This document shows positions 1-20,878 of a stretch of 64,000 bases of DNA, one piece after another. The notes under the pieces are model-generated. The model saw only the letters and a list, made by a program, of their open reading frames with translations, was not told the origin of the DNA and ran no database searches. The number at the start of each line of letters is the position of its first letter. Position 1 is the stretch's first letter. The stretch is from the IMG/VR virus record IMGVR_UViG_3300005613_000001, positions 434,001 to 498,000 of that record. One strand, given 5' to 3'. The position numbers and the translations under genes are program-made.

Positions 1-2144
1 TCATCTTCTGGAATCCCGTTTGCTTTTTTGAAGTGAGCTTTTAAAAATCCCTCCCACTCACCTTGCTTTTCAAAGGGAATGTCCTCACTTTCATAAGGAT
101 CAATACCATGCTTCTTTTTAAATTGTGTCATTAAATCATAGTATTGTATTTTGGGGCGACCATGTGGTGATCTAGGATCAATATGTGATTGATTGTCAAT
201 TTGCGCAATTGGAATTAAAGAACCCGAATCAAAAAACACACCCTGTTTGGGTTCCCCCGAGTGTATAACACTCCAACCCTGACGATCTGTAAAACCATCA
301 ATTCCCAACCCTCTTAAAACTGCCGTCCACTCCCTCCACTTTTTCGCCTTTGACCCTTTGGGCATCACACCAGCTTTAATATCTTTAACCTGTAAATCGT
401 CCAACTCAACCCAATCACGTTCGTTCTTACCTGGAATATGACTGGGCAGTTCAACGTGTGCTAAATTTTTATCTTTGTTGACCTTAAGAACTGTTGCTTC
501 TTTCCCTGCATATTTGCCATTTGCAATATAAACCTTTTTGCCTTTTTCTATTTGTTTGCTTCGTTCTAACTTTCTACCCACGTCCTTTGCTTGTGGAAGT
601 CCTAGCCCCAAAAGTGGGTGGCCGCTAGTTTTTACAATACCCTTCTTTTTCTTCTCTTTCCTCTCACTAGCTAAACTGCTTGCCATCCATAAAATAAATC
701 CCGCCCCATTTTTAGTCCTACTTTGGTCTGTATTCCAAAGTGTTTCGTATAATGCGTTAAACCAACTTAAGTGGTTGGCCTCTGCATATTTTTTAATTCT
801 TTGATGGAAAGGAAACTTAGCTTTATTGATAATAGGATCAACTACATCTCGCTTATAGTTACTCACAAATTTATTGAGGCGGCGCAAAACAAGAGTTGCT
901 ACTTTTTTCCATTCTTCTGATTGAACTACATCTTGTAGGCTTTGTCCTGATTTCTTTTCTTTAGCATTACGTAACGCAACGAGTTTTTCCCAATGCTGTA
1001 CTGTTTTGTTTTTACCATATGCATCATCGCCAAAATAATTAAGAGCGGCTTTATTCTCCCCTTCTAAATCAAATACATCTTTCATAGAAACCGTCTCAGG
1101 GGCTTCTGGATGTTTCTCAAGATAATGGTCCGTATGCTGAACTGTTAAATCTCCAAAATTTGCGTCACGATACTTTGTGAGTCGTTCGTGCCAATTATCA
1201 TAATGACCATCTATATCCACTCTTTGAAGAAAGCTTCTGAGGGCAGACACATGTTCGTCCTCTGTGGCTTTCTCATCGTGTGTTTCTCCCATGCCTTGCA
1301 AGAAATTAAAGGCCATTTCCCTATCTGCTTGTATTGCTAAAATGCCTTTATTCGGATCAATAGTGCCATGATTGGCATAGTGGGCCGACATCTTGTTTAT
1401 TACCGTTCCCAATTTGTCTTCTAATTGTTTTAGGATGGCTTCCTTATGTGGCGTTGTTTTGAAATCCACAGCTTCGGGTAATTGTTTAATTCCTAAATAT
1501 TGGTGTGCCCAAGCCATAATTTTCTTACGCTCTTCCTGTAGTATGTCGTGAAAATCAGGTTTTATTTTCCGTATTTCCTCTCTAATTTCTTCAACTTCTT
1601 GACGAAGATGGGGGAAACTGTACATGCGACTGCCACTATAGTAGCCACCATTGGGCCGCTGTTTTTTTCTTTTTCCCTCTTTTACAGAGGTTGAATAAAT
1701 TGCAGGTTTTCTACCTCGGGATTTAGAATAGGTTCTTCTAATTTTAAATACTTGCGCAAAGGGGCGTTCTTTAAAGCCTCCCTTTGCACTATCATCAATG
1801 ACAGCCTGAATTGGATAAGCATAGATTCCCAAAGGCGTACTACCATCGTCTGCATCTGGATTAACGCCTAATTTATCTACTTGTGTGAAGGCAACCCAAA
1901 TATCTCTTTCAGGAGTTCCCTTCCTTATCTCGCTGGCTAGAATTTGTTTTAATAACCGTATTTTGTCATTATGTCGCCAATTTCTTCGTGTGACTGGATC
2001 AATCCACTTGGTTTGGTCACCTTTGGGCTGGATGCCTCTATGTAATTTTCGCCCTTCGCATAGATACTCTTCCAAGTCAAGAAGTATAACTTCTGCTTGT
2101 TCAATGGCAAAAAAATCTGCAAATTCTAATTTTGATCCCGACAT
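1..2144 (-). CDS. Large protein (>714 aa, runs off the window) with a KOW-like motif and split ADP-ribosyltransferase-like motifs; candidate internal head protein
   Basis: Not in the ORF track because it has no stop in the window. Manual translation is open from ATG 2144 (MSGSKLEFADFFAIEQAE...) to base 1. It contains FTQVDKLGVNP..TPLGIYAYP, KGKKVYIANGKYAGKEATVLKVNKDK (KOW-like) and LGIDGFTD...IHSGEPKQGVFF. Confidence 0.8.
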   Translation of the reverse strand, partial: MSGSKLEFADFFAIEQAEVILLDLEEYLCEGRKLHRGIQPKGDQTKWIDPVTRRNWRHNDKIRLLKQILASEIRKGTPERDIWVAFTQVDKLGVNPDADDGSTPLGIYAYPIQAVIDDSAKGGFKERPFAQVFKIRRTYSKSRGRKPAIYSTSVKEGKRKKQRPNGGYYSGSRMYSFPHLRQEVEEIREEIRKIKPDFHDILQEERKKIMAWAHQYLGIKQLPEAVDFKTTPHKEAILKQLEDKLGTVINKMSAHYANHGTIDPNKGILAIQADREMAFNFLQGMGETHDEKATEDEHVSALRSFLQRVDIDGHYDNWHERLTKYRDANFGDLTVQHTDHYLEKHPEAPETVSMKDVFDLEGENKAALNYFGDDAYGKNKTVQHWEKLVALRNAKEKKSGQSLQDVVQSEEWKKVATLVLRRLNKFVSNYKRDVVDPIINKAKFPFHQRIKKYAEANHLSWFNALYETLWNTDQSRTKNGAGFILWMASSLASERKEKKKKGIVKTSGHPLLGLGLPQAKDVGRKLERSKQIEKGKKVYIANGKYAGKEATVLKVNKDKNLAHVELPSHIPGKNERDWVELDDLQVKDIKAGVMPKGSKAKKWREWTAVLRGLGIDGFTDRQGWSVIHSGEPKQGVFFDSGSLIPIAQIDNQSHIDPRSPHGRPKIQYYDLMTQFKKKHGIDPYESEDIPFEKQGEWEGFLKAHFKKANGIPED

Positions 2145-2161
2145 ATCTTATTTATGTATAT

Positions 2162-2743
2162 ATGAAAACAGTTCTTTTGTTAGTTAGCCATTTAGGGTCG
2201 TCCTCTAATATTTTATTTAATGTCCTGAACCAAAATTCTAGGATTCAAGGCTTTCGTACAGATCGACCTTACTACAACACTGATACATTACAATATTTAA
2301 CTGCCTACGAACATAAATTAAGGAATACCGCAGCAATTTATATGGATGAACTACTCCATAACTTCAAATTCGCTGCTAAAGATCTGTATAAAATCTGCAA
2401 ATTCGTGTATTTGATCCGTGAAGCTAGACCTTCTTTAAATAAAATAATAGCCCGAGGATACTCCCAAAACGCAGCAAGTGATTATTATCGATATAGATTG
2501 AGGCGGATTTGTGAGATGGCTAAACGGACTCCTGGTGCGCCTCTTTTAACTTGGGATGATATGGTTTCTGGGCGAGGACTTCCATTAATAGAAGAATATT
2601 TAAACCTCAAAGAGCCCATCAAGAAGATTTCAATTGGTCCCGAAGCCCCTGACGTGGTGGAATACAATATCGCAGAAAAAGCTCAGGAGGCATATGAAAG
2701 ACACTTTTTATATTTAAAAAAGTTTGATTTAATATCAGCCTAA
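2162..2743 (+). CDS. Degenerate sulfotransferase-like (P-loop) protein
   Basis: MKTVLLLVSHLGSSSNILFNVLNQN resembles the PAPS-binding loop (RSGSTLL..lLNQ), and KFVYLIRE resembles the 3'-phosphate motif. The catalytic K/R of the loop is absent. Start moved to ATG 2162. Confidence 0.45.
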   Translation: MKTVLLLVSHLGSSSNILFNVLNQNSRIQGFRTDRPYYNTDTLQYLTAYEHKLRNTAAIYMDELLHNFKFAAKDLYKICKFVYLIREARPSLNKIIARGYSQNAASDYYRYRLRRICEMAKRTPGAPLLTWDDMVSGRGLPLIEEYLNLKEPIKKISIGPEAPDVVEYNIAEKAQEAYERHFLYLKKFDLISA

Positions 2744-3100
2744 TAGTGTATCAATGTCTGTTTTGCCATCATCTTCTGGTTTCTCAAGTTTCTTTTGCTC
2801 TTCTTCAATCATATTATCAATAATATTAAGAGCATTCATAAGTTGCTCAGGAGACCACGGTTTTGCCTCGGGTTGCGCGGCTTGAATGGCATGTGCAGCA
2901 GAGGGCATTCTGGCAAGTCCAGGCTGGGGCTTTAACTGCCTAGATTCTCTTTTCGCTCTCTTCTTTTCTACTTTGGCTATCTCTTGGAAGGCTGCATTCA
3001 AATGAAATCTTGCCTCTGAAAGCGCAAAATCCTCGGGTATATTTTTGATTGCCTCTAATAAATGTGATTTTGCTTTTGAAGTATTACCCATTATTACCAT
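2735..3100 (-). CDS. Hypothetical coiled-coil protein downstream of terminase
   Basis: 121 aa ORF, helical and charged, overlapping the terL stop; no recognisable motif. Confidence 0.6.
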   Translation of the reverse strand: MVIMGNTSKAKSHLLEAIKNIPEDFALSEARFHLNAAFQEIAKVEKKRAKRESRQLKPQPGLARMPSAAHAIQAAQPEAKPWSPEQLMNALNIIDNMIEEEQKKLEKPEDDGKTDIDTLLG

Positions 3101-4926
3101 CCAAACTCTCGGAGTAACCGCTCGTTTTTTCGCCGTACATTGAAGACAACACCAGGCGTAACATCCCCTTGATAGGTAGCGAAAATGTCGTCATCTTCTT
3201 CAATAAAATCCTCAGGAGCCCCGTTTTTTAACTCCTGTTTAATTTCCTCATAAACTTCTGATTTAAATACATCCATCAGTTCCTTTGGGATGTCTGCTCC
3301 AACGGGAATGTCTCGCATTGCTTGGTCCCGAATGTAAACAGCAATCGCCAAAGCCATAATTGCATCGTCATGTTTGCCCTTCTGAGCTTCTGGTTTCCTT
3401 CTAGAAGTATTATAAATAAATGTTTTCAATTCATGAATTAATCTTGGACTATTAATAATTAAACTTTTTTGTAGAATTCTACTTTGAATTGCCTGCATTA
3501 CCATTGGGCGCACTTGAATGGTAGTTTTAATCCCTGCCTGTTGCCTTTTAGCTGCATCATAATATAGATTCTCATACATCAAAGTATTCTGAAGGGCACT
3601 TATTACTGCACCTCCTGATGATGCCATGTTTTCCACAACTATCTTTGATGTGTTGTAAAAAATTCCAGTTTGATTTATGATCTGAGCAAAATCATGAGGC
3701 GGGACTTTATTGCTATAGAACTCTGCTACTTGTTCAAGGGTGGAATCATCAATTATTGAAAAAGCACTACTATCGCCCCCTTCTCCAACACCATCTGCAC
3801 AATCCACTCCCATTGTGTATTCGTGACCATCTACAGGTTCTTTCCAAACCCACAACGCCCCTTCTTCTTCTGCATACTCTTCGTGATCGTTACACCACTG
3901 AGGAAATAAAATACGTTTAGGTCCATCTTTTGTTCTAATATTCGCATCAATGTCAGCGATAATGTGACCGGGAATATATGTTTCACCAGAACCCAGGAAT
4001 GATCGCATAACTTCCTGTTGCCAACCCTTTTCTCCCAGTTGTGCTCGTTGATCTGCAACCCAGTCAGCATCGTTGTAATCCGGGTGTTCCCAGAAATCTA
4101 AATCAATGACATGAAATTTATTTTTCTTAACTTGAGCGTTATGATAAATTTCCTCATACCAGTTACCAAGACCATTAACTGTAGAAATGGCGATACAATT
4201 ACCACCCGTAGAAAGCGTAGGATACATAGCTTTCCAATGCTCTTCCATACCATCGATGAAGGCAGCCTCATCCAAGATCATATAAGTTAAAGCACGGGTA
4301 CGAGCAGCTTCAGGGCCTTGGAAATCAATACGACTACTTGTGATTAAAAATTCTTTAACGTGGTCATTATTTTTACCCATTTCAGGTTGCAACCATGTTG
4401 GTAGCCACTGAATAGCTCGGGCAACCATACCAGCACCCGTCATAGCTTCACGGTCGGTCTTTGACATAACCATCATGGTCTGGTCTTTTTTAAACATACA
4501 CCGCCATAAAGCCCAAATAGCTGTGGTGGTGGTTAGCCCTCCCTGTCGGAATTTAGAAATAATTGTGAATCTATGTTTATCGTATTCATCAATTACCCGC
4601 CTCTGATAATTGTATAGAACAAAGGGCAGGAGACCCCTAATGGGATGCATGATTTTGATGTATTTGTGGCAAAAGTAAGGAAAATTATTGATACATTTTA
4701 TAATTTCTTCTCTTTGTTTTGCTGGATCACGTCCATATGCTTCAACTTCTGCGTCTGTTTCATCTGGATCAATTGCTATTTCATCGGCAGATAGTGTGTA
4801 GTAGGGAAATTGCTCTTCTGCCTTAATTACATTCAATGTCTCTGGATCAAGAATGCTATACTGTTGATTAAACTCATTTGCATAGTAATCTTCCAAAGTG
4901 TCGTATTTATCTCGCCATATACTCAT
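3094..4926 (-). CDS. terL: Terminase large subunit (T4 gp17-like)
   Basis: Walker A-like ISKFRQGGLTT, Walker B LDEAAFI, coupling motif STVNG, RNase H-like nuclease GVDCADG...D and KHDDAIMA. Likely start MSIWRDK at 4926. Confidence 0.95.
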   Translation of the reverse strand: MSIWRDKYDTLEDYYANEFNQQYSILDPETLNVIKAEEQFPYYTLSADEIAIDPDETDAEVEAYGRDPAKQREEIIKCINNFPYFCHKYIKIMHPIRGLLPFVLYNYQRRVIDEYDKHRFTIISKFRQGGLTTTTAIWALWRCMFKKDQTMMVMSKTDREAMTGAGMVARAIQWLPTWLQPEMGKNNDHVKEFLITSSRIDFQGPEAARTRALTYMILDEAAFIDGMEEHWKAMYPTLSTGGNCIAISTVNGLGNWYEEIYHNAQVKKNKFHVIDLDFWEHPDYNDADWVADQRAQLGEKGWQQEVMRSFLGSGETYIPGHIIADIDANIRTKDGPKRILFPQWCNDHEEYAEEEGALWVWKEPVDGHEYTMGVDCADGVGEGGDSSAFSIIDDSTLEQVAEFYSNKVPPHDFAQIINQTGIFYNTSKIVVENMASSGGAVISALQNTLMYENLYYDAAKRQQAGIKTTIQVRPMVMQAIQSRILQKSLIINSPRLIHELKTFIYNTSRRKPEAQKGKHDDAIMALAIAVYIRDQAMRDIPVGADIPKELMDVFKSEVYEEIKQELKNGAPEDFIEEDDDIFATYQGDVTPGVVFNVRRKNERLLREFGW

Positions 4927-4931
4927 ATCAT

Positions 4932-4957
4932 TATTTATGTAAGTAGAAACGTAAATA
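4932..4957. promoter_or_regulatory. Back-to-back late-promoter-like TAAATA hexamers
   Basis: TATTTA at 4932-4937 (TAAATA on minus) is 5 nt from terL ATG 4926; TAAATA at 4952-4957 is 5 nt from ATG 4963. Resembles the T4 late promoter TATAAATA. Confidence 0.6.
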
Positions 4958-4962
4958 AAAGT

Positions 4963-5178
4963 ATGGACGATCAAGAGAAAAAAGACATGGAGATGTCACC
5001 ACCCAAGAGGCGGGGAATTATCACGACGGGTACAATTGTTACCACTCTTATCGTGGCGGCGCTCCTAGAAGTTTTCAAAGCTACGATTAATTTCCTGTGG
5101 GGTCTTTTGTTAACTAAATTCTGGAAAAAGAAACAAGAGGAAGCAGAAAAAGAACAAAAGAAGAGTCAGTGGAATTAA
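4963..5178 (+). CDS. Small membrane protein
   Basis: MDDQEKKD... with one long hydrophobic segment and a basic C-terminal tail (KKKQEE). Start reassigned from 4810 because the upstream part overlaps terL. Confidence 0.55.
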   Translation: MDDQEKKDMEMSPPKRRGIITTGTIVTTLIVAALLEVFKATINFLWGLLLTKFWKKKQEEAEKEQKKSQWN

Positions 5179-5187
5179 GAGGTAATT

Positions 5188-6246
5188 ATGAAAACGAAAA
5201 CGTTATTGTTAATTATTGTGGCGGGTTTAGGTTTATTTATCATTTTTCCTAATTTAGAAGTACCGCCACCAAAAGAGCAAGGTGGATTTAGTGGGATTGT
5301 AGAACACATAACCCAACCACCAGAAAAAAATTCACTTGATGATGCTGTCAGTGCTATCTCGCAAGAGGAGCTTAAAGAAGACCTCTATTACCTAGCCTCA
5401 GACGATTTAAAAGGCAGAATGACGGGAGAGCCCGGCAATGTCAAAGCGGCTGAATTTATCAAGAAAAGGCTGTTAGAATATGGACTTCAGGTAGAATATC
5501 AGCCTTTCAGTGCTGGTGGGAGAAGCACAAACAACGTCATTGGTTGGTTAGATGGGGAAAATACCAATGAAATCGTCGTTGTAGGAGCCCATTTTGACCA
5601 TATTGGTATGAGAGGCGGGGGGGTGTGTAATGGGGCTGATGATAATGCCTCCGGTACTGTAGCCGTAATCCAAATGGCTAAAGTGTTTTCCATGTTAAAG
5701 GATGAATTAAAGCGTACCGTGGTCTTTCAACTGTATTCTGGGGAGGAAATGGGACTGATCGGCAGCCGGTTCTATGCCAATAATCCAACCTTCCCCCGTG
5801 GAAATCCCAATATTAAGAACCACATTTTCATGTTGAATCTTGATATGGTAGGATATATGAACAATGGATACTACTACGCCCTAAGCCATGTGGATACTTC
5901 CTTTGATTTGCGACAAATTCGCTCTGAATTAAGTCAAAAATACCCGTTTGCGGGAGGTATCACAAAAACAGGCGGTAGTGGAAGTGACCACCAAAGCTTC
6001 TCAAATAAGGGTGTTCCGGTCTTGTGGCTCTTTACGGGAACCCACGGAAATTATCACAGAACGACGGATACAGCCGAAAAAATCAATTATGATGGCTTGG
6101 AAAAAATCACCAAATATGGATTTGAAATCCTCTGGAAAGTGGCGCAAAGTGAAGCTGCACCAGTATTTAATAAGGAAGGCTACGAACATTTGCCGATTAC
6201 AAATGACCATAATCATCCAAATGTTCCATTTCCAATTCAATATTAG
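5188..6246 (+). CDS. M28-family zinc aminopeptidase with N-terminal signal/anchor
   Basis: GAHFDH, GADDNASG, SGEEMGL, LNLDMVG, SDHQSF and YHRTTD motifs; hydrophobic N-terminus. Confidence 0.92.
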   Translation: MKTKTLLLIIVAGLGLFIIFPNLEVPPPKEQGGFSGIVEHITQPPEKNSLDDAVSAISQEELKEDLYYLASDDLKGRMTGEPGNVKAAEFIKKRLLEYGLQVEYQPFSAGGRSTNNVIGWLDGENTNEIVVVGAHFDHIGMRGGGVCNGADDNASGTVAVIQMAKVFSMLKDELKRTVVFQLYSGEEMGLIGSRFYANNPTFPRGNPNIKNHIFMLNLDMVGYMNNGYYYALSHVDTSFDLRQIRSELSQKYPFAGGITKTGGSGSDHQSFSNKGVPVLWLFTGTHGNYHRTTDTAEKINYDGLEKITKYGFEILWKVAQSEAAPVFNKEGYEHLPITNDHNHPNVPFPIQY

Positions 6247-7931: not shown

Positions 7932-8507
7932 ATGGACGAAATTAAAGTAGAAGTGATCCGTACCGAGGATGGCAGATATGCCGAGCGTCACGTCAGGGAA
8001 GTTGCGGAAAGTGATCCCTGCGGAAAGTCCTTTGAAGCTGAAAAGGTCATCGAGCAATGGGAAGAAGATCGCCCCTTGCTTCTCAAAAAGCGAGTGCGCG
8101 AGAAGAGACAACCATGTGTTGTGGAAAGAGTTGTTGAGACAATTGAAGACAACGAAGTGGTTGATGTTCAAGTAGAATCTATTGAGCCTGACACCAAGCT
8201 TGAATTAAGATCTCACATTGCAGTTGCCAAGCCAGAAGTAGGTGCAGCAAAAGTCGATGAGTGCTACGTAACTAGAGATGATCTTAAAGAAGTCATGTTA
8301 AGCGTGACAGAACAGTTGAAAGATGCTTTTGAAAACCGAGAGGTTGCTGAAAGACGACCGAGTTCTCGCATGCAAGCGGTAGTAGAAGAAGAAGTTGAAC
8401 AGGCTGATGATGAAAAATGGGGAGCAGTAGAGTGGATTCTTCTGGGCATTGTAGCCATCGAGGGTGCCTATCTACTAGTGAACTGGCTGCCTCGTCTGCT
8501 TGGGTAA
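7932..8507 (+). CDS. Hypothetical tail-anchored membrane protein
   Basis: GAGAGG SD before ATG 7932; charged body with a single C-terminal TM (WILLGIVAIEGAYLLVNWL). Confidence 0.65.
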   Translation: MDEIKVEVIRTEDGRYAERHVREVAESDPCGKSFEAEKVIEQWEEDRPLLLKKRVREKRQPCVVERVVETIEDNEVVDVQVESIEPDTKLELRSHIAVAKPEVGAAKVDECYVTRDDLKEVMLSVTEQLKDAFENREVAERRPSSRMQAVVEEEVEQADDEKWGAVEWILLGIVAIEGAYLLVNWLPRLLG

Positions 8508-8609
8508 TTTGGCAAGATAAATATAAATTACATAACTTCCCGTTCTATGACGTTTACATAAAAATTGCACCAGTAGTACGTATTACATTTAAGAATCTGT
8601 ATGATATGC

Positions 8610-8643
8610 AAAAGCCTTATGATTTTAGATCATGAGGCTTTTT
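8610..8643. terminator. Bidirectional terminator between convergent genes
   Basis: AAAAGCCT(T)ATGA-loop-TCATGAGGCTTTTT. Confidence 0.75.
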
Positions 8644-9167
8644 CATTTGAATCCCCACTTTTTAGCCATCCTACCAAACCACTGATCCCTAGCTTCAACT
8701 GCCTGCTCTTCCCTCTCTTTGCGACTCTCTTTCTTGTCATCGCCTCTTAATTTTGAGGCGACTCTAAAAAGCCCCTCTATTTGATCTTCCCATCTGGGAT
8801 GAGGCACATAACTTTCTAGTTCGCCCGCCTCCTCTTTGAAAACCAAATAACCCTCTGCTAACACCGTGATAGTCTTATTGAGGTATTGTATCTCTAAATG
8901 CATTCCACGACTTAAACCATCAAATAAATAACCAACTACTATTGTTTGTTCGCCTTCCTCAAAAACAGGCATTTCCTCATCTTCTTCATCTTCTAGTGCC
9001 CAAGGGTCTTCCATTTCATTTGTATCATAAAGAGGCGAGGAGTGGGACATAATAGGTTCGCCCATATACTTCAAAATACAACCGAATTTTCCCCCAAGAC
9101 CAAAATAATCTTTATGGGTCGCCTCGATTGTTCTTTGTTCTTTGATTTTTGCTTCTTTGCTCTTCAT
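8643..9167 (-). CDS. Hypothetical protein
   Basis: 174 aa ORF co-oriented with and overlapping mscL; no motif recognised. Confidence 0.6.
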   Translation of the reverse strand: MKSKEAKIKEQRTIEATHKDYFGLGGKFGCILKYMGEPIMSHSSPLYDTNEMEDPWALEDEEDEEMPVFEEGEQTIVVGYLFDGLSRGMHLEIQYLNKTITVLAEGYLVFKEEAGELESYVPHPRWEDQIEGLFRVASKLRGDDKKESRKEREEQAVEARDQWFGRMAKKWGFK

Positions 9168-9681
9168 CTATTTTATTCTTCGCAAAAGGGTTATCCAAGA
9201 TAGTAGTGCAATAAGGGCATCTGGCTGATTGATAATGAATTTTACATAAACAAAATGGGCATTCAATTCCCTCGTCACAAATTATCTCAGGAGGCTTATC
9301 ATCCTGTTCAATTCTTCTAAATATTCTGCTGTATAGGTAGTATAAAATCGCTGCAATTATAATAAAATCTACAAATACCCCTAAAAAGTTGCCCAATTCA
9401 ATAACAACTCCTTCTATGGGCTCAAAAACTACCTTTCGCCAATCACCGTCAGCCTGATTCATAATATAGGTCAAGAAAGGCATGATAAGATGCTCTGAGA
9501 TAGATGCTACTACATTTTTAAATGCTGCCCCGAGCATAAAGGCAATAGCCATTTGAATCATTCTATCCTTGAATGCAAACTCTTTGAACGCCTCAAATTC
9601 CTTCCGTCCGACAAGACCTTCGATCTCATCTCCCAACTCATCTTTGATGCGTTCTACATCTATTATTGACTTAGGTTTCAT
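9112..9681 (-). CDS. mscL: Large-conductance mechanosensitive channel with C-terminal zinc-ribbon-like CxxC...CxxC
   Basis: FKEFAFKDRMIQMAIAFMLGAAFKNVVASISEHLIMP aligns with MscL S1/TM1 ([37 protein letters not shown]). TM2 is GNFLGVFVDFIIIAAILY; C-terminal CPFC..CPYC. Confidence 0.88.
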   Translation of the reverse strand: MKPKSIIDVERIKDELGDEIEGLVGRKEFEAFKEFAFKDRMIQMAIAFMLGAAFKNVVASISEHLIMPFLTYIMNQADGDWRKVVFEPIEGVVIELGNFLGVFVDFIIIAAILYYLYSRIFRRIEQDDKPPEIICDEGIECPFCLCKIHYQSARCPYCTTILDNPFAKNKIDEEQRSKNQRTKNNRGDP

Positions 9682-9684
9682 ATA

Positions 9685-9692
9685 TATAAATA
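9685..9692 (+). promoter_or_regulatory. T4-type late promoter TATAAATA
   Basis: Exact TATAAATA octamer in the 47-bp divergent gap before the peptidase at 9729. Confidence 0.55.
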
Positions 9693-9728
9693 GAGTAAAA
9701 ACTATCTTATTATCAGGAGGATCTAGTT

Positions 9729-11186
9729 ATGTTCGATTGGTTCCAAAACTTTTTAGATTGGTTCTACGGATTATTCTCTAGCGGCGAAAAAGCCGAGGCA
9801 AGGAAAGAGGATTTGTACATCCAATACTTGATGAATGATCCAACGACCCCAGAATTAATGGTAGAAGTCGTGCCACCTAACCCGCCCAAAGGCATGGATT
9901 TCCTAGTTCAAAATTATGTGGGTGGAGGATACCCTTGGGATCATTCCAAGGGACGTGCCGCAAACTGTTATGTTACGATGGCGCAAACTATTAAACAAAT
10001 TCAACGATATTCCCCCAGACCATTACAGCGATGGGCAGCTACGAACACCCTGTTGGTTGTCCCACAAGCGGGAAGACAACTAAATGCGTATTATGACCGT
10101 AGACATTTGAAGTTTTTCTATGCTTACGATAGAGAAATGCGAAAGGATGTTTATACATCCGACTCAGTGGATATTGTTGCACACGAATTGGGACACGCAC
10201 TTTTAGATACTATGCGACCTGACTTGTGGAGCGTACAATCACTAGAAGGATGGGGTTTCCATGAAGCATATTCTGATGTAAATGCTATTCTGGCATTACT
10301 TGGAAATGATGAAATTGTAAATCACGTTTTGAAAGAAACAGAAAATGATTTGAGGAAACATAATGTTGTTTCCAAATTAGCAGAAGAAATGGGCGATGCC
10401 ATCTATAATATCACCCGAGGAAGAGATGGTAGAAAACCGGGTGCCCTAAGAAATGCTATTAATAACTTCAAATATACTGAACCTGAAAAATTGCCCCAAA
10501 ATGCTCCCCACGATAAATTGGCCGGGGAATGCCATAGCTTTGGAAGATTATTCTTAGGTGCTTGGTATGACTTCCTAGTGGCTCTCTATGAACATAAACG
10601 AGCCCGAGGTAAAACGCCTAAAACAGCATTAAAAGAGGCGAGAGATGTCGCGGGACTTTATATTGTCCGTGGATTATCTCACGCTCCCGCATGCGTGCGA
10701 TACTACAATGCTGTCGCTAGAGCTATGATGGCTTATGATAAAACAAAATGTCATTCTCGCTATCAAAAGATTCTTCAAGAGGTATTCACAAAACGAGGAA
10801 TCTTGCGTCCAAAAGCTAGAGTCCTTTCTAATTTAACTTGGCAGGGACTAAACCTTAAGAATGATGATGATGTCATGAAATCAGACCACGGCTGGGTAGT
10901 CAGGTCAAAGAAAATTGAAACTTTAAAACTATCGGATCATTTAGAAGCTAGAACCCTAGTGAATAATCCATTGTTTAATGTTGAAATTGAAGTTCCAAGA
11001 GATAGCTACTTTGAATTTGATGCCAACGGCAACTTAGTTGACCAAATTCAAGAAAGTACCGAGGAAGTAGTGAATGCAGCTAGAGCTTGTTTGGTCCAAT
11101 TGGATACCCAAGGACAAGTAGGCGATGGCGAAGACACTATGTTTGCTATCGTAGATGGAAAATTAGTTAGAACTCATATTGAGTAA
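9729..11186 (+). CDS. Thermolysin/fungalysin-like (M4/M36) zinc metallopeptidase
   Basis: NAYYD, DIVAHELGH (HExxH) and GFHEAYSD (third zinc ligand Glu); amphipathic Trp/Phe-rich N-terminus. Confidence 0.88.
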   Translation: MFDWFQNFLDWFYGLFSSGEKAEARKEDLYIQYLMNDPTTPELMVEVVPPNPPKGMDFLVQNYVGGGYPWDHSKGRAANCYVTMAQTIKQIQRYSPRPLQRWAATNTLLVVPQAGRQLNAYYDRRHLKFFYAYDREMRKDVYTSDSVDIVAHELGHALLDTMRPDLWSVQSLEGWGFHEAYSDVNAILALLGNDEIVNHVLKETENDLRKHNVVSKLAEEMGDAIYNITRGRDGRKPGALRNAINNFKYTEPEKLPQNAPHDKLAGECHSFGRLFLGAWYDFLVALYEHKRARGKTPKTALKEARDVAGLYIVRGLSHAPACVRYYNAVARAMMAYDKTKCHSRYQKILQEVFTKRGILRPKARVLSNLTWQGLNLKNDDDVMKSDHGWVVRSKKIETLKLSDHLEARTLVNNPLFNVEIEVPRDSYFEFDANGNLVDQIQESTEEVVNAARACLVQLDTQGQVGDGEDTMFAIVDGKLVRTHIE

Positions 11187-11192
11187 GAACAC

Positions 11193-11241
11193 ACCCGGCG
11201 TACCGCTCCCTTTGGTGACGTACATAAAGGCCGGGTTTTTT
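11193..11241. terminator. Probable terminator between convergent genes
   Basis: ACCCGGC...GCCGGGT stem followed by a T-run; long loop. Confidence 0.6.
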
Positions 11242-11242
11242 C

Positions 11243-12052
11243 TTATGCATATCCAAAAAATCTGTTGTAATCTTGAAACCTATTCATAATAGTGTTTGCA
11301 AGATCAGGAGAAAAATACTGCCTCCACTCGTTAGGATCAGAAGCCTCAACCTTACCCGATCCCGTGTGTGGGAACTTATGCAAATAAAATCCATCAGGGT
11401 CTTCAGCGGTGTTCTCTATGTTTTCAAAATCATGCTCAAATAGTGTTTCGTCTAATTCAGTGTAAATCTTCTCAAAGACACCATTTGGATCGGCTGCCAT
11501 ACTCTCATACTGAACATAAACAACACCAGGCGGTTTGCGACGAATTAAATCCTCAATTCCTAAAATGGGACCACCTATCAAACCCTGTTCACTAAACATA
11601 CGGTTTGCCCTGTCAAAAACAGTCTTTTGAATGGCATTCTGAGCATCATCCAATAGAGGATTCTTTCGATGTTGTTTCTCTATAGAAGCAAAAACATTTC
11701 TTAAATCCCGCACCATCACAATGAGCTTGGAATCAGGATAAAGCTTCTTTAATGAAAGGGAATTGAGTGACCACGCCCGGCTCTTATCAAAAATAATCTC
11801 CCGACTTTCCTGCTTATACCAAGTTTCTACGAAAGCCTGGATACTATCTGTAATCCGTTGCTCGGTTTCCACCTTCTTTTTCTCTAAAAGACTTTTTACC
11901 TCTACGGCATTACTGATATTATGAACCATACCATTGAGAATTCCCGGCAAAGGAGATGTACTGGTAGCCCAAAACCGTGGGTTCTGATTCAAAATATTAC
12001 ATAAAAGCGTACTACCAGCCCTCGGTAGCCCCGTAATAGCATTTAATTTCAT
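11243..12052 (-). CDS. Sulfotransferase family protein
   Basis: GLPRAGSTLLCNILNQ PAPS loop, DKSRAW and VMVRDLRNVFAS. Confidence 0.88.
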   Translation of the reverse strand: MKLNAITGLPRAGSTLLCNILNQNPRFWATSTSPLPGILNGMVHNISNAVEVKSLLEKKKVETEQRITDSIQAFVETWYKQESREIIFDKSRAWSLNSLSLKKLYPDSKLIVMVRDLRNVFASIEKQHRKNPLLDDAQNAIQKTVFDRANRMFSEQGLIGGPILGIEDLIRRKPPGVVYVQYESMAADPNGVFEKIYTELDETLFEHDFENIENTAEDPDGFYLHKFPHTGSGKVEASDPNEWRQYFSPDLANTIMNRFQDYNRFFGYA

Positions 12053-12481
12053 TTATGTGATTCCCAATGCTGTTTCAACTTCTTCTAGTTGGGTTTGCAA
12101 TGTAGCGATCACAGCAGGATCTTCCTCCGCCTCAATTTTTTCTCTAAGTATTTTTTCTTTAGATAAATTAGCCACAACCGCAACTAATCCACCCATCACT
12201 TGCGCCAATGCTGGAACTCTGGCTGATTCTGTCAAGAGATTTTCAATTTCAAACACCTGGGGTTGCGGTGGTCCTAATTCTGAAGTATCAAAATTATAAG
12301 GAACCATAATTGCTCTTGCGCTAGGGACCAGGGGGTTTTCGCTTGGATTTCTACGATGTTGGCGAACATTTGCCGTAACGTGCAACTCTGCAATATAGCG
12401 ATCTGGATATGTTTTCTCCTCTGTGGCAGGAACCGCAGGGATTACAACTGGATCGACTGAATCTATTCTTGGTAAAGACAT
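12053..12481 (-). CDS. Hypothetical protein
   Basis: 142 aa ORF with AGGAG SD, abutting the sulfotransferase. Confidence 0.65.
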   Translation of the reverse strand: MSLPRIDSVDPVVIPAVPATEEKTYPDRYIAELHVTANVRQHRRNPSENPLVPSARAIMVPYNFDTSELGPPQPQVFEIENLLTESARVPALAQVMGGLVAVVANLSKEKILREKIEAEEDPAVIATLQTQLEEVETALGIT

Positions 12482-15379: not shown

Positions 15380-19456
<4,077 letters not shown>

Positions 19457-19474: not shown

Positions 19475-20878
19475 TTATATATGGCTGTTACGCATACCTT
19501 TACACAGAAGAATATAAGATGAGGTATCTTCTCCGCCTTCAATCCACTTTTCGGCCCAATTAAATCTTATTATATCTTTAATTTCAATTAGATCGCCCAA
19601 CCTTTTTCGCAAGGTATCTTCTGAATAAACTCGCACATGAGCCGGGTCAGTAAAAGAAGGAACAGAAAAGATCACATTTTTATTAGCAGGAATTTTAGAT
19701 ATAATTTTAATATCATCTAAATGCTCTAAGACTTCTGTAAGAACATAGGTGTCGTAATCGCCAAAATCTTCTTCATACGCATCGGCTTTCCACACATTAG
19801 GATTGTTAGCCACTCGTACAGCCTCATCACTAAAATCAAAACCATGATAGTTGTGAATATAATATTGCAATTCGGCTGTACCACAACCTATTTCCAAAAC
19901 ACTTCCAGTCGCCCAATCCGCAACTTTCTTAGTAATTGCTTCATAGCGACTCATATCTGTGCTTTTTTTGAAGATCTTGTTGTAATATTCTGATTTTTGT
20001 TCTAGGGCTTCATGGGTGAATAAGACGGCATCATTTGTAGCCATCCCTGCGAATTGTTCCCATTTTTTCCTGTTTTTAGGGCCTGACATTTGTGCCATTA
20101 GGTTAAGTGCGGCTCTAAAGTCAGCATTTATTTTAATTGCTTGCAAACAGGCATCTCTTGCTTTTTCGCCTTGCTGTAGCTGCCAATAGGATTTAGCTAA
20201 AAGATAATAAGCATCTGCCATCTCCCCGCCCCAAGATTTCTTTTCTAGATAGATTTGGAGCCAATAGACTGCTTTTTCCCATTCATATTTGTATGTGTAT
20301 TCCCGCCCCAAATAATAGACTTCTCTAACGAGGTTTGGATTTTTTTTAATTTCTTTAGTTAAAATTCTTAGTGTTCTATTGGGGTCATCATTATGCGAGG
20401 GGCTTTTATAGAAGTTAATTTTAACATCGAGTCGTTCTTGTTTTGAGATACCTTTGAGGTAATTATGGATAGCTCCGTGCCATTTTATTTCAGGTTTATT
20501 AAGGCAGACTCTTGGAGAGTAGAAAGAGGTATTTCCTCCGACAACCCGTAAACAGAGGGCTTCGCATGGAGTTTCTTTAATTTTTTCACGAATTTTATCA
20601 AGACCACCATCCTCTAGAATCTCATCTGCATCGATAATGAGAATCCAATCTCCGGTAGCTTTGGTATTGGCAAAATTTCGTGCTTCAGCGAAATTATCAT
20701 TCCAGACGTATTCATTTTCAAAGAAATTATCTGTATATTTTAATGCTACATCTCTTGTTTTATCGGTAGAACCCGTATCAACAATTACAATTTCATCTAC
20801 GTCTTTAATGGATTCAAGGCAATTACCCAGCATTACCTCTTCATTTTTAACTATCAATACTGCTGAAATCTTTGTCAT
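19475..20878 (-). CDS. GT2 glycosyltransferase - TPR - class I SAM methyltransferase fusion
   Basis: ISAVLIVKNEE...DEIVIVDTGSTD...ILIIDADE (GT2), TPR-like helices (YYLGREY, YYLLAKSY), then VLEIGCGT...VLEH. Confidence 0.88.
   Translation of the reverse strand: MTKISAVLIVKNEEVMLGNCLESIKDVDEIVIVDTGSTDKTRDVALKYTDNFFENEYVWNDNFAEARNFANTKATGDWILIIDADEILEDGGLDKIREKIKETPCEALCLRVVGGNTSFYSPRVCLNKPEIKWHGAIHNYLKGISKQERLDVKINFYKSPSHNDDPNRTLRILTKEIKKNPNLVREVYYLGREYTYKYEWEKAVYWLQIYLEKKSWGGEMADAYYLLAKSYWQLQQGEKARDACLQAIKINADFRAALNLMAQMSGPKNRKKWEQFAGMATNDAVLFTHEALEQKSEYYNKIFKKSTDMSRYEAITKKVADWATGSVLEIGCGTAELQYYIHNYHGFDFSDEAVRVANNPNVWKADAYEEDFGDYDTYVLTEVLEHLDDIKIISKIPANKNVIFSVPSFTDPAHVRVYSEDTLRKRLGDLIEIKDIIRFNWAEKWIEGGEDTSSYILLCKGMRNSHI

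Follow-up and report, generated by a model that had tools for sequence, protein, structure and literature searches.

The window analysed here is a stretch of 64,000 nucleotides, corresponding to positions 434001-498000 of a source record of 527,112 bp. At its left end, a minus-strand frame free of stop codons occupies window positions 3-2144. An ORF check over the whole record showed that this frame constitutes codons 1-714 of the gene for a 1292-residue minus-strand protein, P0002, located at genome 432266-436144 (in locus L002, the whole gene spans 8266-12144, with the protein P0002 at 8269-12144 on the minus strand). The original prediction had described an uninterrupted minus-strand frame missing from the ORF track; this frame is real and is the start of the 1292-codon gene, and it was absent from the ORF list because the gene runs past the window edge. 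Promoter and terminator scans flanking the gene gave results no better than those of shuffles. The features of the locus are as follows, in window coordinates.

3094-4974, minus strand: large terminase subunit (TerL), upstream neighbour of P0002 and co-oriented with it
2735-3100, minus strand: 121-aa ORF between TerL and P0002, no family match
1-2144, minus strand: ORF of the N-terminal 714 codons of P0002; the other 578 codons lie beyond window base 1 (genome 432266-434000)
2055-2144, minus strand: N-terminal amphipathic helix, residues 1-30, conserved, with F-x-x-[FY]-[FLI]-x-[IL]-x-E and two L-x-E sites
1617-1907, minus strand: first half of the ART-like core, residues 80-176 (strand 1, 82-87; strand 2, 107-111; strand 3, 129-135)
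1812-1838, minus strand: TPLGIYAYP, residues 103-111, on and ahead of strand 2, with near-invariant Y108 and Y110
645-1616, minus strand: insertion separating the core halves, residues 177-500, mostly helical
546-644, minus strand: Lys-rich linker, residues 501-533, partly disordered (pLDDT <50 at 507-523)
387-545, minus strand: KOW/SH3-like barrel, residues 534-586, in P0002 and P0003 only
342-386, minus strand: second flexible linker, residues 587-601 (pLDDT <50 at 587-599)
192-341, minus strand: second half of the ART-like core, residues 602-651
3-191, minus strand: C-terminal helical region, residues 652-714 within the window, extending past it to ~640 residues in total

On the minus strand, the genes are ordered as large terminase, 121-aa ORF, P0002, 105-aa ORF, and an intein-containing T4-type portal, and beyond the portal lie a 619-aa ORF, an S77 prohead protease and further head genes. 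The phage is a megaphage with T4-type head genes. The contig of P0003, a protein 59% identical to P0002, keeps the same gene order and extends to a gp23-type capsid gene. A 115-aa gene was also observed on this contig at the position equivalent to the 121-aa ORF.

Residues 1-1200 of P0002 were modelled with AlphaFold using 74 aligned relatives (pLDDT 81.3). In this model, N-terminal helices span residues 8-74, and the amphipathic helix at the extreme N-terminus is common to the long and mid-length members of the family described below. The N-terminus had been called rich in F-x-x-F and L-x-E, and residues 1-30 do carry an F-x-x-[FY] motif and two L-x-E sites, but across the protein L/I-x-E tripeptides were not enriched (13 observed vs 14.3 expected), and L/I-x-E content as a mark of T4-type protease processing was dropped on this count. 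The N-terminal motif was likewise rejected as a general capsid-targeting tag, because elsewhere in the genome only one paralogue has it. The second half of the core is predicted to consist of a helix at 602-612 with W606, strand 4 at 617-620 with D620, a loop with H628 and E631, strand 5 at 634-637 starting from Q634, and strand 6 at 643-650, followed by N651. A helical insert of about 55 aa or more is present at the core split in all family members, that of P0002 being among the largest. From about residue 666 to 1192 the model is all-helical; fold searches described residues 761-896 as a generic helical bundle, and from residue 955 on there are two-helix modules of ~65-72 aa, of which P0002 has five and P0003 seven. 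Three of the five P0002 modules were recognised by a profile made from non-orthologous copies.

The two motif blocks singled out by the original prediction are both present, TPLGIYAYP at residues 103-111 and GIDGF...IHSGEPKQGVFF at residues 614-638, the latter ending in HSGEPKQGVFF. An exhaustive phmmer search with P0002 residues 1-1200 as the query against 1.84 billion cluster representatives gave 880 metagenomic phage proteins at E<=1e-3, 68 of them at E<=1e-10, and nearly all aligned in two stretches, query ~45-140 and ~596-665. Both blocks were found in 154 of the ~158 relatives retrieved, with a gap of 54-426 residues between them. The shortest gap, 54 residues, belonged to proteins of 220-450 aa, the spacing across the family was usually only 55-150 residues, and it reached ~420 in P0002 and its closest relatives. 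As the blocks are paired in relatives at such widely varying gaps, they are the halves of one conserved domain, which is split in P0002 by an insertion of ~420 residues; the earlier view that two fold halves are separated by a large insertion was therefore upheld.

The family signature reads [FYW]-[VI]-[ST]-F-T ... K-x-G-x-N-P ... T-P-x-G-I-Y-x-Y-P in the first half and W...R-x-x-G-x-D-G-x-x-D ... I-H-x-x-E-P-x-Q-x-V-F-F ... N in the second. Conservation was counted over ~245 members with ~25% pairwise identity. D620, E631 and Q634 were conserved in 244/244, 241/244 and 242/244 members, respectively, and T103, P104 and G106 in 240/246, 245/246 and 242/246. Position 108 was Tyr in 220/246 members and Phe in 24, Y110 was conserved in 226, position 628 was His in 221 and Tyr in 19, and N651 was conserved in 221. 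P0002 retains all ten of these residues, T103 through N651. Searches by sequence placed the family in no named group: when P0002, ten relatives and 52 compact members were scanned against Pfam and PHROG, KOW in P0002 was the sole match, and the database names of the members were 'hypothetical protein' throughout. With P0002 and three other members as queries, tblastn against 50,697 phage records, a set from which near-identical records may be excluded, gave no match even at E<=1, sequence and profile searches of the PDB returned only a weak uL24 match to the KOW and a chance omega-subunit match, and an ESM Atlas feature search with each half of P0002 gave no usable match.

The fold of the domain was examined in a compact member, P0149 (241 aa), modelled by AlphaFold with a 52-member alignment (pLDDT 91.8, pTM 0.84). 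The model is laid out as three strands, a four-helix insert and three more strands, and its resemblance to the ADP-ribosyltransferase (ART) superfamily was found in three structure libraries. In BFVD, the best named matches were 'ART-PolyVal-like' and 'PolyVal ADP-ribosyltransferase' proteins (E 6.5e-6 and 3.3e-5, prob 1.00), and a 'PARP catalytic domain' protein was also matched. The nearest ESM Atlas clusters carry PF18760 ART-PolyVal (TM 0.50-0.55 over 156-184 residues), and weaker fold matches were obtained for AcrIF11, RES/ParT toxins, diphtheria toxin and PARPs. The split six-stranded sheet and its flanking helices matched solved ARTs over both halves, and the best solved structural match of the domain was cyanophage A4 gp27, a similarity at the domain level with an rmsd of 5.7 Å. 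The expected likeness to ART folds was seen with the compact P0149 model but not with the 1200-residue P0002 model, for which fold searches picked up the KOW and the generic bundle of helices and missed the ART core. The core of P0002 is best placed in a sequence-orphan family that combines an ART-PolyVal-like fold with non-canonical invariant residues.

At the profile level, PF18760 (31.2 bits cut-off) matched nothing in P0002, in the 52 members or anywhere in the P0002 genome, and in related megaphages the same model does detect real members. For hhalign, two alignments were made of PF18760 genes taken from other megaphages that also carry the P0002 family. The family compared with ART-PolyVal gave weak values of 24% (E 8e-4, 42 columns) and 15.5% (E 1.7e-3, 17 columns), and the similarity was confined to the G-I-D-G vs G-Y-D-G strand. 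A name-word search for more ART-PolyVal sequences yielded 3 proteins.

A KOW-like segment had been noted just ahead of the late motif, and it is genuine: residues 534-565 scored 30.5 bits against the Pfam PF00467 threshold of 22.3, and the P0002 model contains a small SH3-like barrel at 537-586, with a fold like the NusG/uL24 KOW, inside the insertion that precedes the second core half. The barrel-bearing segment, about residues 505-598, was found only in P0002 and the 59%-identical P0003; it is missing from the other long orthologues P0005 and P0008-P0012, in none of which Pfam detected a KOW. The KOW is therefore a recent lineage-specific insertion outside the mechanism of the family. A barrel on flexible basic tethers, as modelled, would suit docking or the binding of nucleic acid, and nothing in the P0002 evidence points to RNA polymerase specifically as its partner.

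We further inspected the genomic neighbourhoods in 77 IMG/VR loci that the family profile retrieved. A T4-like TerL, portal, protease or capsid gene lay <=6 kb from a family member in 18 of the 77 loci, and members were direct neighbours of head genes in several independent lineages: between TerL and portal in L059, directly after TerL in L073/L078 and for P0073, directly after the portal in L014/L015, and directly before the protease in L069. ART genes in such positions are regarded as probably head-packaged by comparative genomics (PMC9503650). The TerL-portal synteny of P0002, together with the fold match to A4 gp27, suggests that P0002 may be built into the virion. The family as a whole extends beyond head modules. 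The P0002 genome has two further paralogues, at 279 kb and 516-518 kb, both in non-structural neighbourhoods among replication and RNA-metabolism genes. Across the family, tandem arrays of 2-7 paralogues occurred in 25/77 loci, and bona fide ART-PolyVal (PF18760) genes were located ~0.6-6 kb from members in several megaphages. One of the paralogues in the P0002 genome and the compact member L005 each lie near one or the other of a CCA-adding enzyme gene and RlaP; an RNA-repair association was dropped, as each of these links was found in 1/77 loci.

The reading that we favour, with confidence somewhat above even, is that P0002 is a multidomain head-cluster protein in which an ART-like core with a tethered KOW acts as a late, packaged, NAD+-using enzyme. 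Under this reading, the gene would be expressed together with the head genes, and the protein would become part of the prohead and be delivered alongside the DNA. NAD+ would be bound by the ART-like domain, its nicotinamide stacked against Y108/Y110; E631/Q634, at the front edge of strand 5, would act on the ribose with the help of D620 and H628; and ADP-ribose would be moved to a host target, or NAD+ otherwise processed there. The insert between strands 3 and 4 has grown to about 420 residues in P0002 and, solely in this lineage, gained the KOW barrel on two flexible Lys-rich linkers; barrel and basic linkers may provide contacts to nucleic acid or to the transcription/translation machinery. 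The analysis establishes the gene and its synteny, the family with its split domain, and the fold likeness of both core and KOW, whereas we infer catalysis, NAD+ use, packaging and target: the invariant Asp, Glu and Gln with His and Tyr argue for catalysis, the ART-like fold argues for NAD+ as the substrate, and the synteny with the gp27 match argues for packaging. In particular, an enzyme whose active site is unusual is favoured by the invariance of D620, E631 and Q634 and the near-invariance of Y108, Y110 and H628.

The same residues bear on whether P0002 might instead be a structural, non-catalytic head-internal or ejection protein built on a degenerate ART-like scaffold (a pseudoenzyme), as A4 gp27 may be, with Lys-rich linkers, KOW and helical tail that arrange the packaged DNA, bind it, or form a conduit for ejection. 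The DNA-contacting pre-ejectosome layer formed by gp27, the loss of the canonical strand-1 His/Arg, the ~640 residues of helical repeats with net-basic segments, and the gene position between TerL and portal are all in keeping with such a role. However, constancy at these six positions over ~245 very divergent members is active-site-like rather than scaffold-like, many members are short (220-450 aa) stand-alone proteins or form tandem arrays away from head genes, and a T4-type contractile-tail head module needs no podovirus-style ejectosome. We consider a purely structural role unlikely, though by no means negligible. A rather unlikely explanation is that P0002 is a non-packaged cytoplasmic effector for counter-defence or host takeover, ART/NADase-like, from a phage family that diversifies fast (comparable to AcrIF11 or to NAD+ degraders of the RES/NatT type) and placed in the late region by chance. 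It would account for the tandem arrays in 25/77 loci, the non-structural location of two of the three paralogues in the P0002 genome, the nearby ART-PolyVal genes in several megaphages, and the fold similarity reaching AcrIF11, NatT, MbcT and ParT. Against it, the orthologue group of P0002 keeps the TerL-portal position at 59% identity, members lie right beside TerL, portal or protease in lineages independent of one another, and a 1292-aa architecture with long helical regions is unlike the small soluble Acr-type enzymes.

Two further explanations concern the target and the lineage of the enzyme. An ART-like enzyme directed at nucleic acid (DarT- or KptA/Tpt1-like, acting on DNA/RNA ends), with the KOW as its binding module, would agree with the RNA binding of KOW in uL24 and its presence in nucleic-acid machines, and with the paralogue and the L005 member near CCA-adding enzyme or RlaP genes; yet this link is limited to 1/77 loci each, the KOW occurs in only two family members, and the KptA H-H-h motif is absent, which leaves this explanation very improbable. 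To true membership of the R-S-E Alt/VIP2 group we assign practically no probability. A large protein near head genes is a general analogy to T4 Alt, and P0002 has a local S-T-S at 151-153, but this tripeptide is present only in P0002 and P0003, and its reading as the R-S-E motif was rejected because it is not conserved. The strand-1 Arg is absent (A85 in P0002; S 171, T 38, H 19, Q 8 and N 7 of 246 in the family), strand 2 is G-I-Y-A-Y-P in place of S-T-S, and there is no E-x-E. Pfam ART families, those of the R-S-E type included, gave no match in P0002 at E<=10 or in 52 members at E<=1, and the closest folds belong to the H-Y-[EDQ] type. These motif and profile tests on P0002 and the family refute T4 Alt-family membership, and the 'Alt-like' label of the original prediction fell with it, no R-S-E triad being present. 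Because the residue sets differ and profile matches are lacking, P0002 is, by these sequence measures, outside both PF18760 as defined and the Alt family.

Head-packaged ADP-ribosyltransferases are already an established idea (T4 Alt, polyvalent proteins). At the 50% identity level, the family described here numbers at least 880 representatives, frequently in tandem arrays in the largest known phages. Neither Pfam nor PHROGs nor BLAST against cultured phages detects it, so every survey of phage NAD+/ADP-ribose systems would miss it. Should the family prove active, its residue set would extend the chemistry known for the ART fold, and a block of 'hypothetical' megaphage genes and an unannotated domain of a solved ejection protein would acquire a function open to testing. 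The KOW insertion is a natural experiment on the possible aiming of an injected enzyme. A bolder proposal, quite unlikely in our estimate and put forward tentatively, is that P0002 is a founding representative of a new clade of ART-fold enzymes without the strand-1 His/Arg, one lineage of which became an injected head effector docked by its KOW on the host transcription-translation machinery. The catalytic constellation of this clade would be Y-x-Y in strand 2, with the invariant Asp following strand 4 and H-x-x-E-P-x-Q ahead of strand 5, and the clade would have expanded into tandem arrays in jumbo and mega-phages. If this is true, the matching domain of A4 gp27 would likewise be a capsid-borne enzyme that has gone unrecognised.

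Among known systems, the resemblances to AcrIF11, the RES-domain toxins (MbcT, NatT, VPA0770), ParT, diphtheria toxin and PARP catalytic domains come with low scores, 5-17% identity and catalytic constellations that differ. With NusG/Spt5 and uL24 (PF00467), P0002 shares an above-threshold profile match and the same small barrel, but it has neither an NGN domain nor a ribosomal-protein context, the KOW is its only Pfam domain, and its barrel sits inside another domain on disordered linkers, in two sequences only. A4 gp27 forms the outer layer of a capsid-internal pre-ejectosome (PDB 9k3a chain B), was located inside the capsid by cryo-EM, where it contacts the first DNA circle, and is described by its authors without an enzymatic domain (PMC12002296). 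It differs from the family in having no detectable sequence similarity (family profile vs PDB sequences, E<=10) and in coming from a podovirus, where ejection proteins build a trans-envelope channel.

T4 Alt is a large ART-fold late protein that is packaged in the head, injected, and modifies host proteins (PMC5512222, PMC9503650), and by analogy it may serve as the functional model for P0002 as a late, packaged and injected large ART-fold protein. It belongs to the R-S-E Alt/VIP2 clade, defined by Arg, Ser and Glu (Iyer et al., PMC5512222). Alt, an R-S-E-2 member, has a contiguous, C-terminal catalytic domain, whereas the ART-like core of P0002 is split; the alt gene, unlike that of P0002, is not located between terminase and portal; and none of the motifs of Alt is found in P0002. 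ART-PolyVal, a domain of polyvalent proteins from phages and conjugative elements, is predicted to be virion-delivered (PMC5512222), and the polyvalent-protein ART has His in strand 1, Tyr in strand 2 and Asp in strand 5 (Iyer et al., PMC5512222). In our family, the strand-1 His is replaced by Ser/Thr in 85% of members and by Ala in P0002, His remaining in 19/246 (8%); H-x-x-E-P-x-Q stands before strand 5 in place of the Asp, with E631 and Q634 directly preceding the predicted strand; and the T-P-x-G and K-x-G-x-N-P motifs have no counterpart in ART-PolyVal. Nevertheless, ART-PolyVal (PF18760; Tox-ART-HYD2 clade) is the nearest named fold in BFVD and ESM Atlas, the strand-2 Tyr is present in the family as Y108 (220/246) within G-I-Y-x-Y-P, and the elements follow in the same order: strand 1, strand 2 with G-h-Y, strand 3, a variable helical insert ending in a Trp helix, and then the G-[IY]-D-G strand 4.

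The 527,112-bp virus record (G000) encodes two more paralogues from the split-domain family, the unannotated phage proteins with an ART-like fold whose two motif blocks are parted by an insert:

genome 279084-280505 (L083:1474-2895), plus strand, 473-aa paralogue amid gp32/helicase-like genes
genome 516021-518276 (L095:6021-8276), minus strand, 751-aa paralogue amid CCA-adding enzyme, DNA methylase and AAA genes

Neither sits among head genes, and the N-terminal motif of P0002, the 1292-aa protein encoded between the terminase (TerL) and portal genes, is also present in the 751-aa paralogue. Tandem arrays of 2-7 family paralogues each were found in 25 of the 77 IMG/VR loci, contigs of 250-561 kb included (for example L032:4573-12674 and L004:6925-15710, and in L038, L039, L043, L050, L051, L056 and L060). 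The split-domain family thus looks like a multigene family that is diversifying rapidly.

The C-terminal part of P0002 lies outside the window and is repetitive:

P0002 residues 955-1265 (L002:8350-9282), two-helix module in five copies, repeating approximately every 65-72 residues

Using a profile made from non-orthologous units, three of the five units outscored 499-500 of 500 shuffles. P0003, the 59%-identical relative on a related contig, carries seven copies, compared to five in P0002.

Two features were located at the start of P0002:

window 2132-2743, plus strand, 203-aa ORF between P0002 and the 121-aa ORF, on the strand opposite to both
window 2145-2170 and L002:4726-4760, minus strand, CATATATA, a short distance upstream of two start codons

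No family match was found for the 203-aa ORF. It is probably a real gene, since the P0003 contig has a gene of 193 aa at the equivalent place, oriented the same way. The sequence CATATATA precedes the starts of P0002 and of a 619-aa head-module ORF. There was no obvious Shine-Dalgarno sequence upstream of P0002, in contrast to the portal, protease and following genes, which have GGAGG-like sites.

Further genes were as follows:

genome 429339-431912 (L002:5339-7912), minus strand, T4-type portal gene (PF07230, E 4e-77)
window 5188-6246, plus strand, M28 metallopeptidase, adjoining the terminase gene divergently
window 11243-12052, minus strand, sulfotransferase
window 15380-19453, minus strand, 1357-aa protein with collagen triple-helix repeats in ten stretches (PF01391, E 2e-71)
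window 19475-20878, minus strand, fusion of a GT2 glycosyltransferase with TPR and methyltransferase domains

In the portal protein, residues 119-333, N-terminal to the portal domain, form an intein splicing domain (PF14890), and the product of the portal gene on the related JGI contig (L003:7321-9885) has one as well. The rise in GC to 0.50-0.54 at window 16-20 kb is due to the collagen-repeat gene.

In several megaphage records, canonical ART-PolyVal genes (PF18760) lie approximately 0.6-6 kb from split-domain family members:

G001 293578-294774, near L046
G010 83533-84057, inside L029
G016 137694-138116, adjoining L056
G027 64345-64815, adjoining L009

A tandem run of four PF18760 genes was observed in G008 (247454-250736). 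In cyanophage A4 gp27, an ejection protein of solved structure, the region best matching the family model was residues ~1120-1611 (PDB 9k3a chain B). The structure paper (PMC12002296) nowhere mentions an ART-like domain; these gp27 residues themselves appear to be ART-like.
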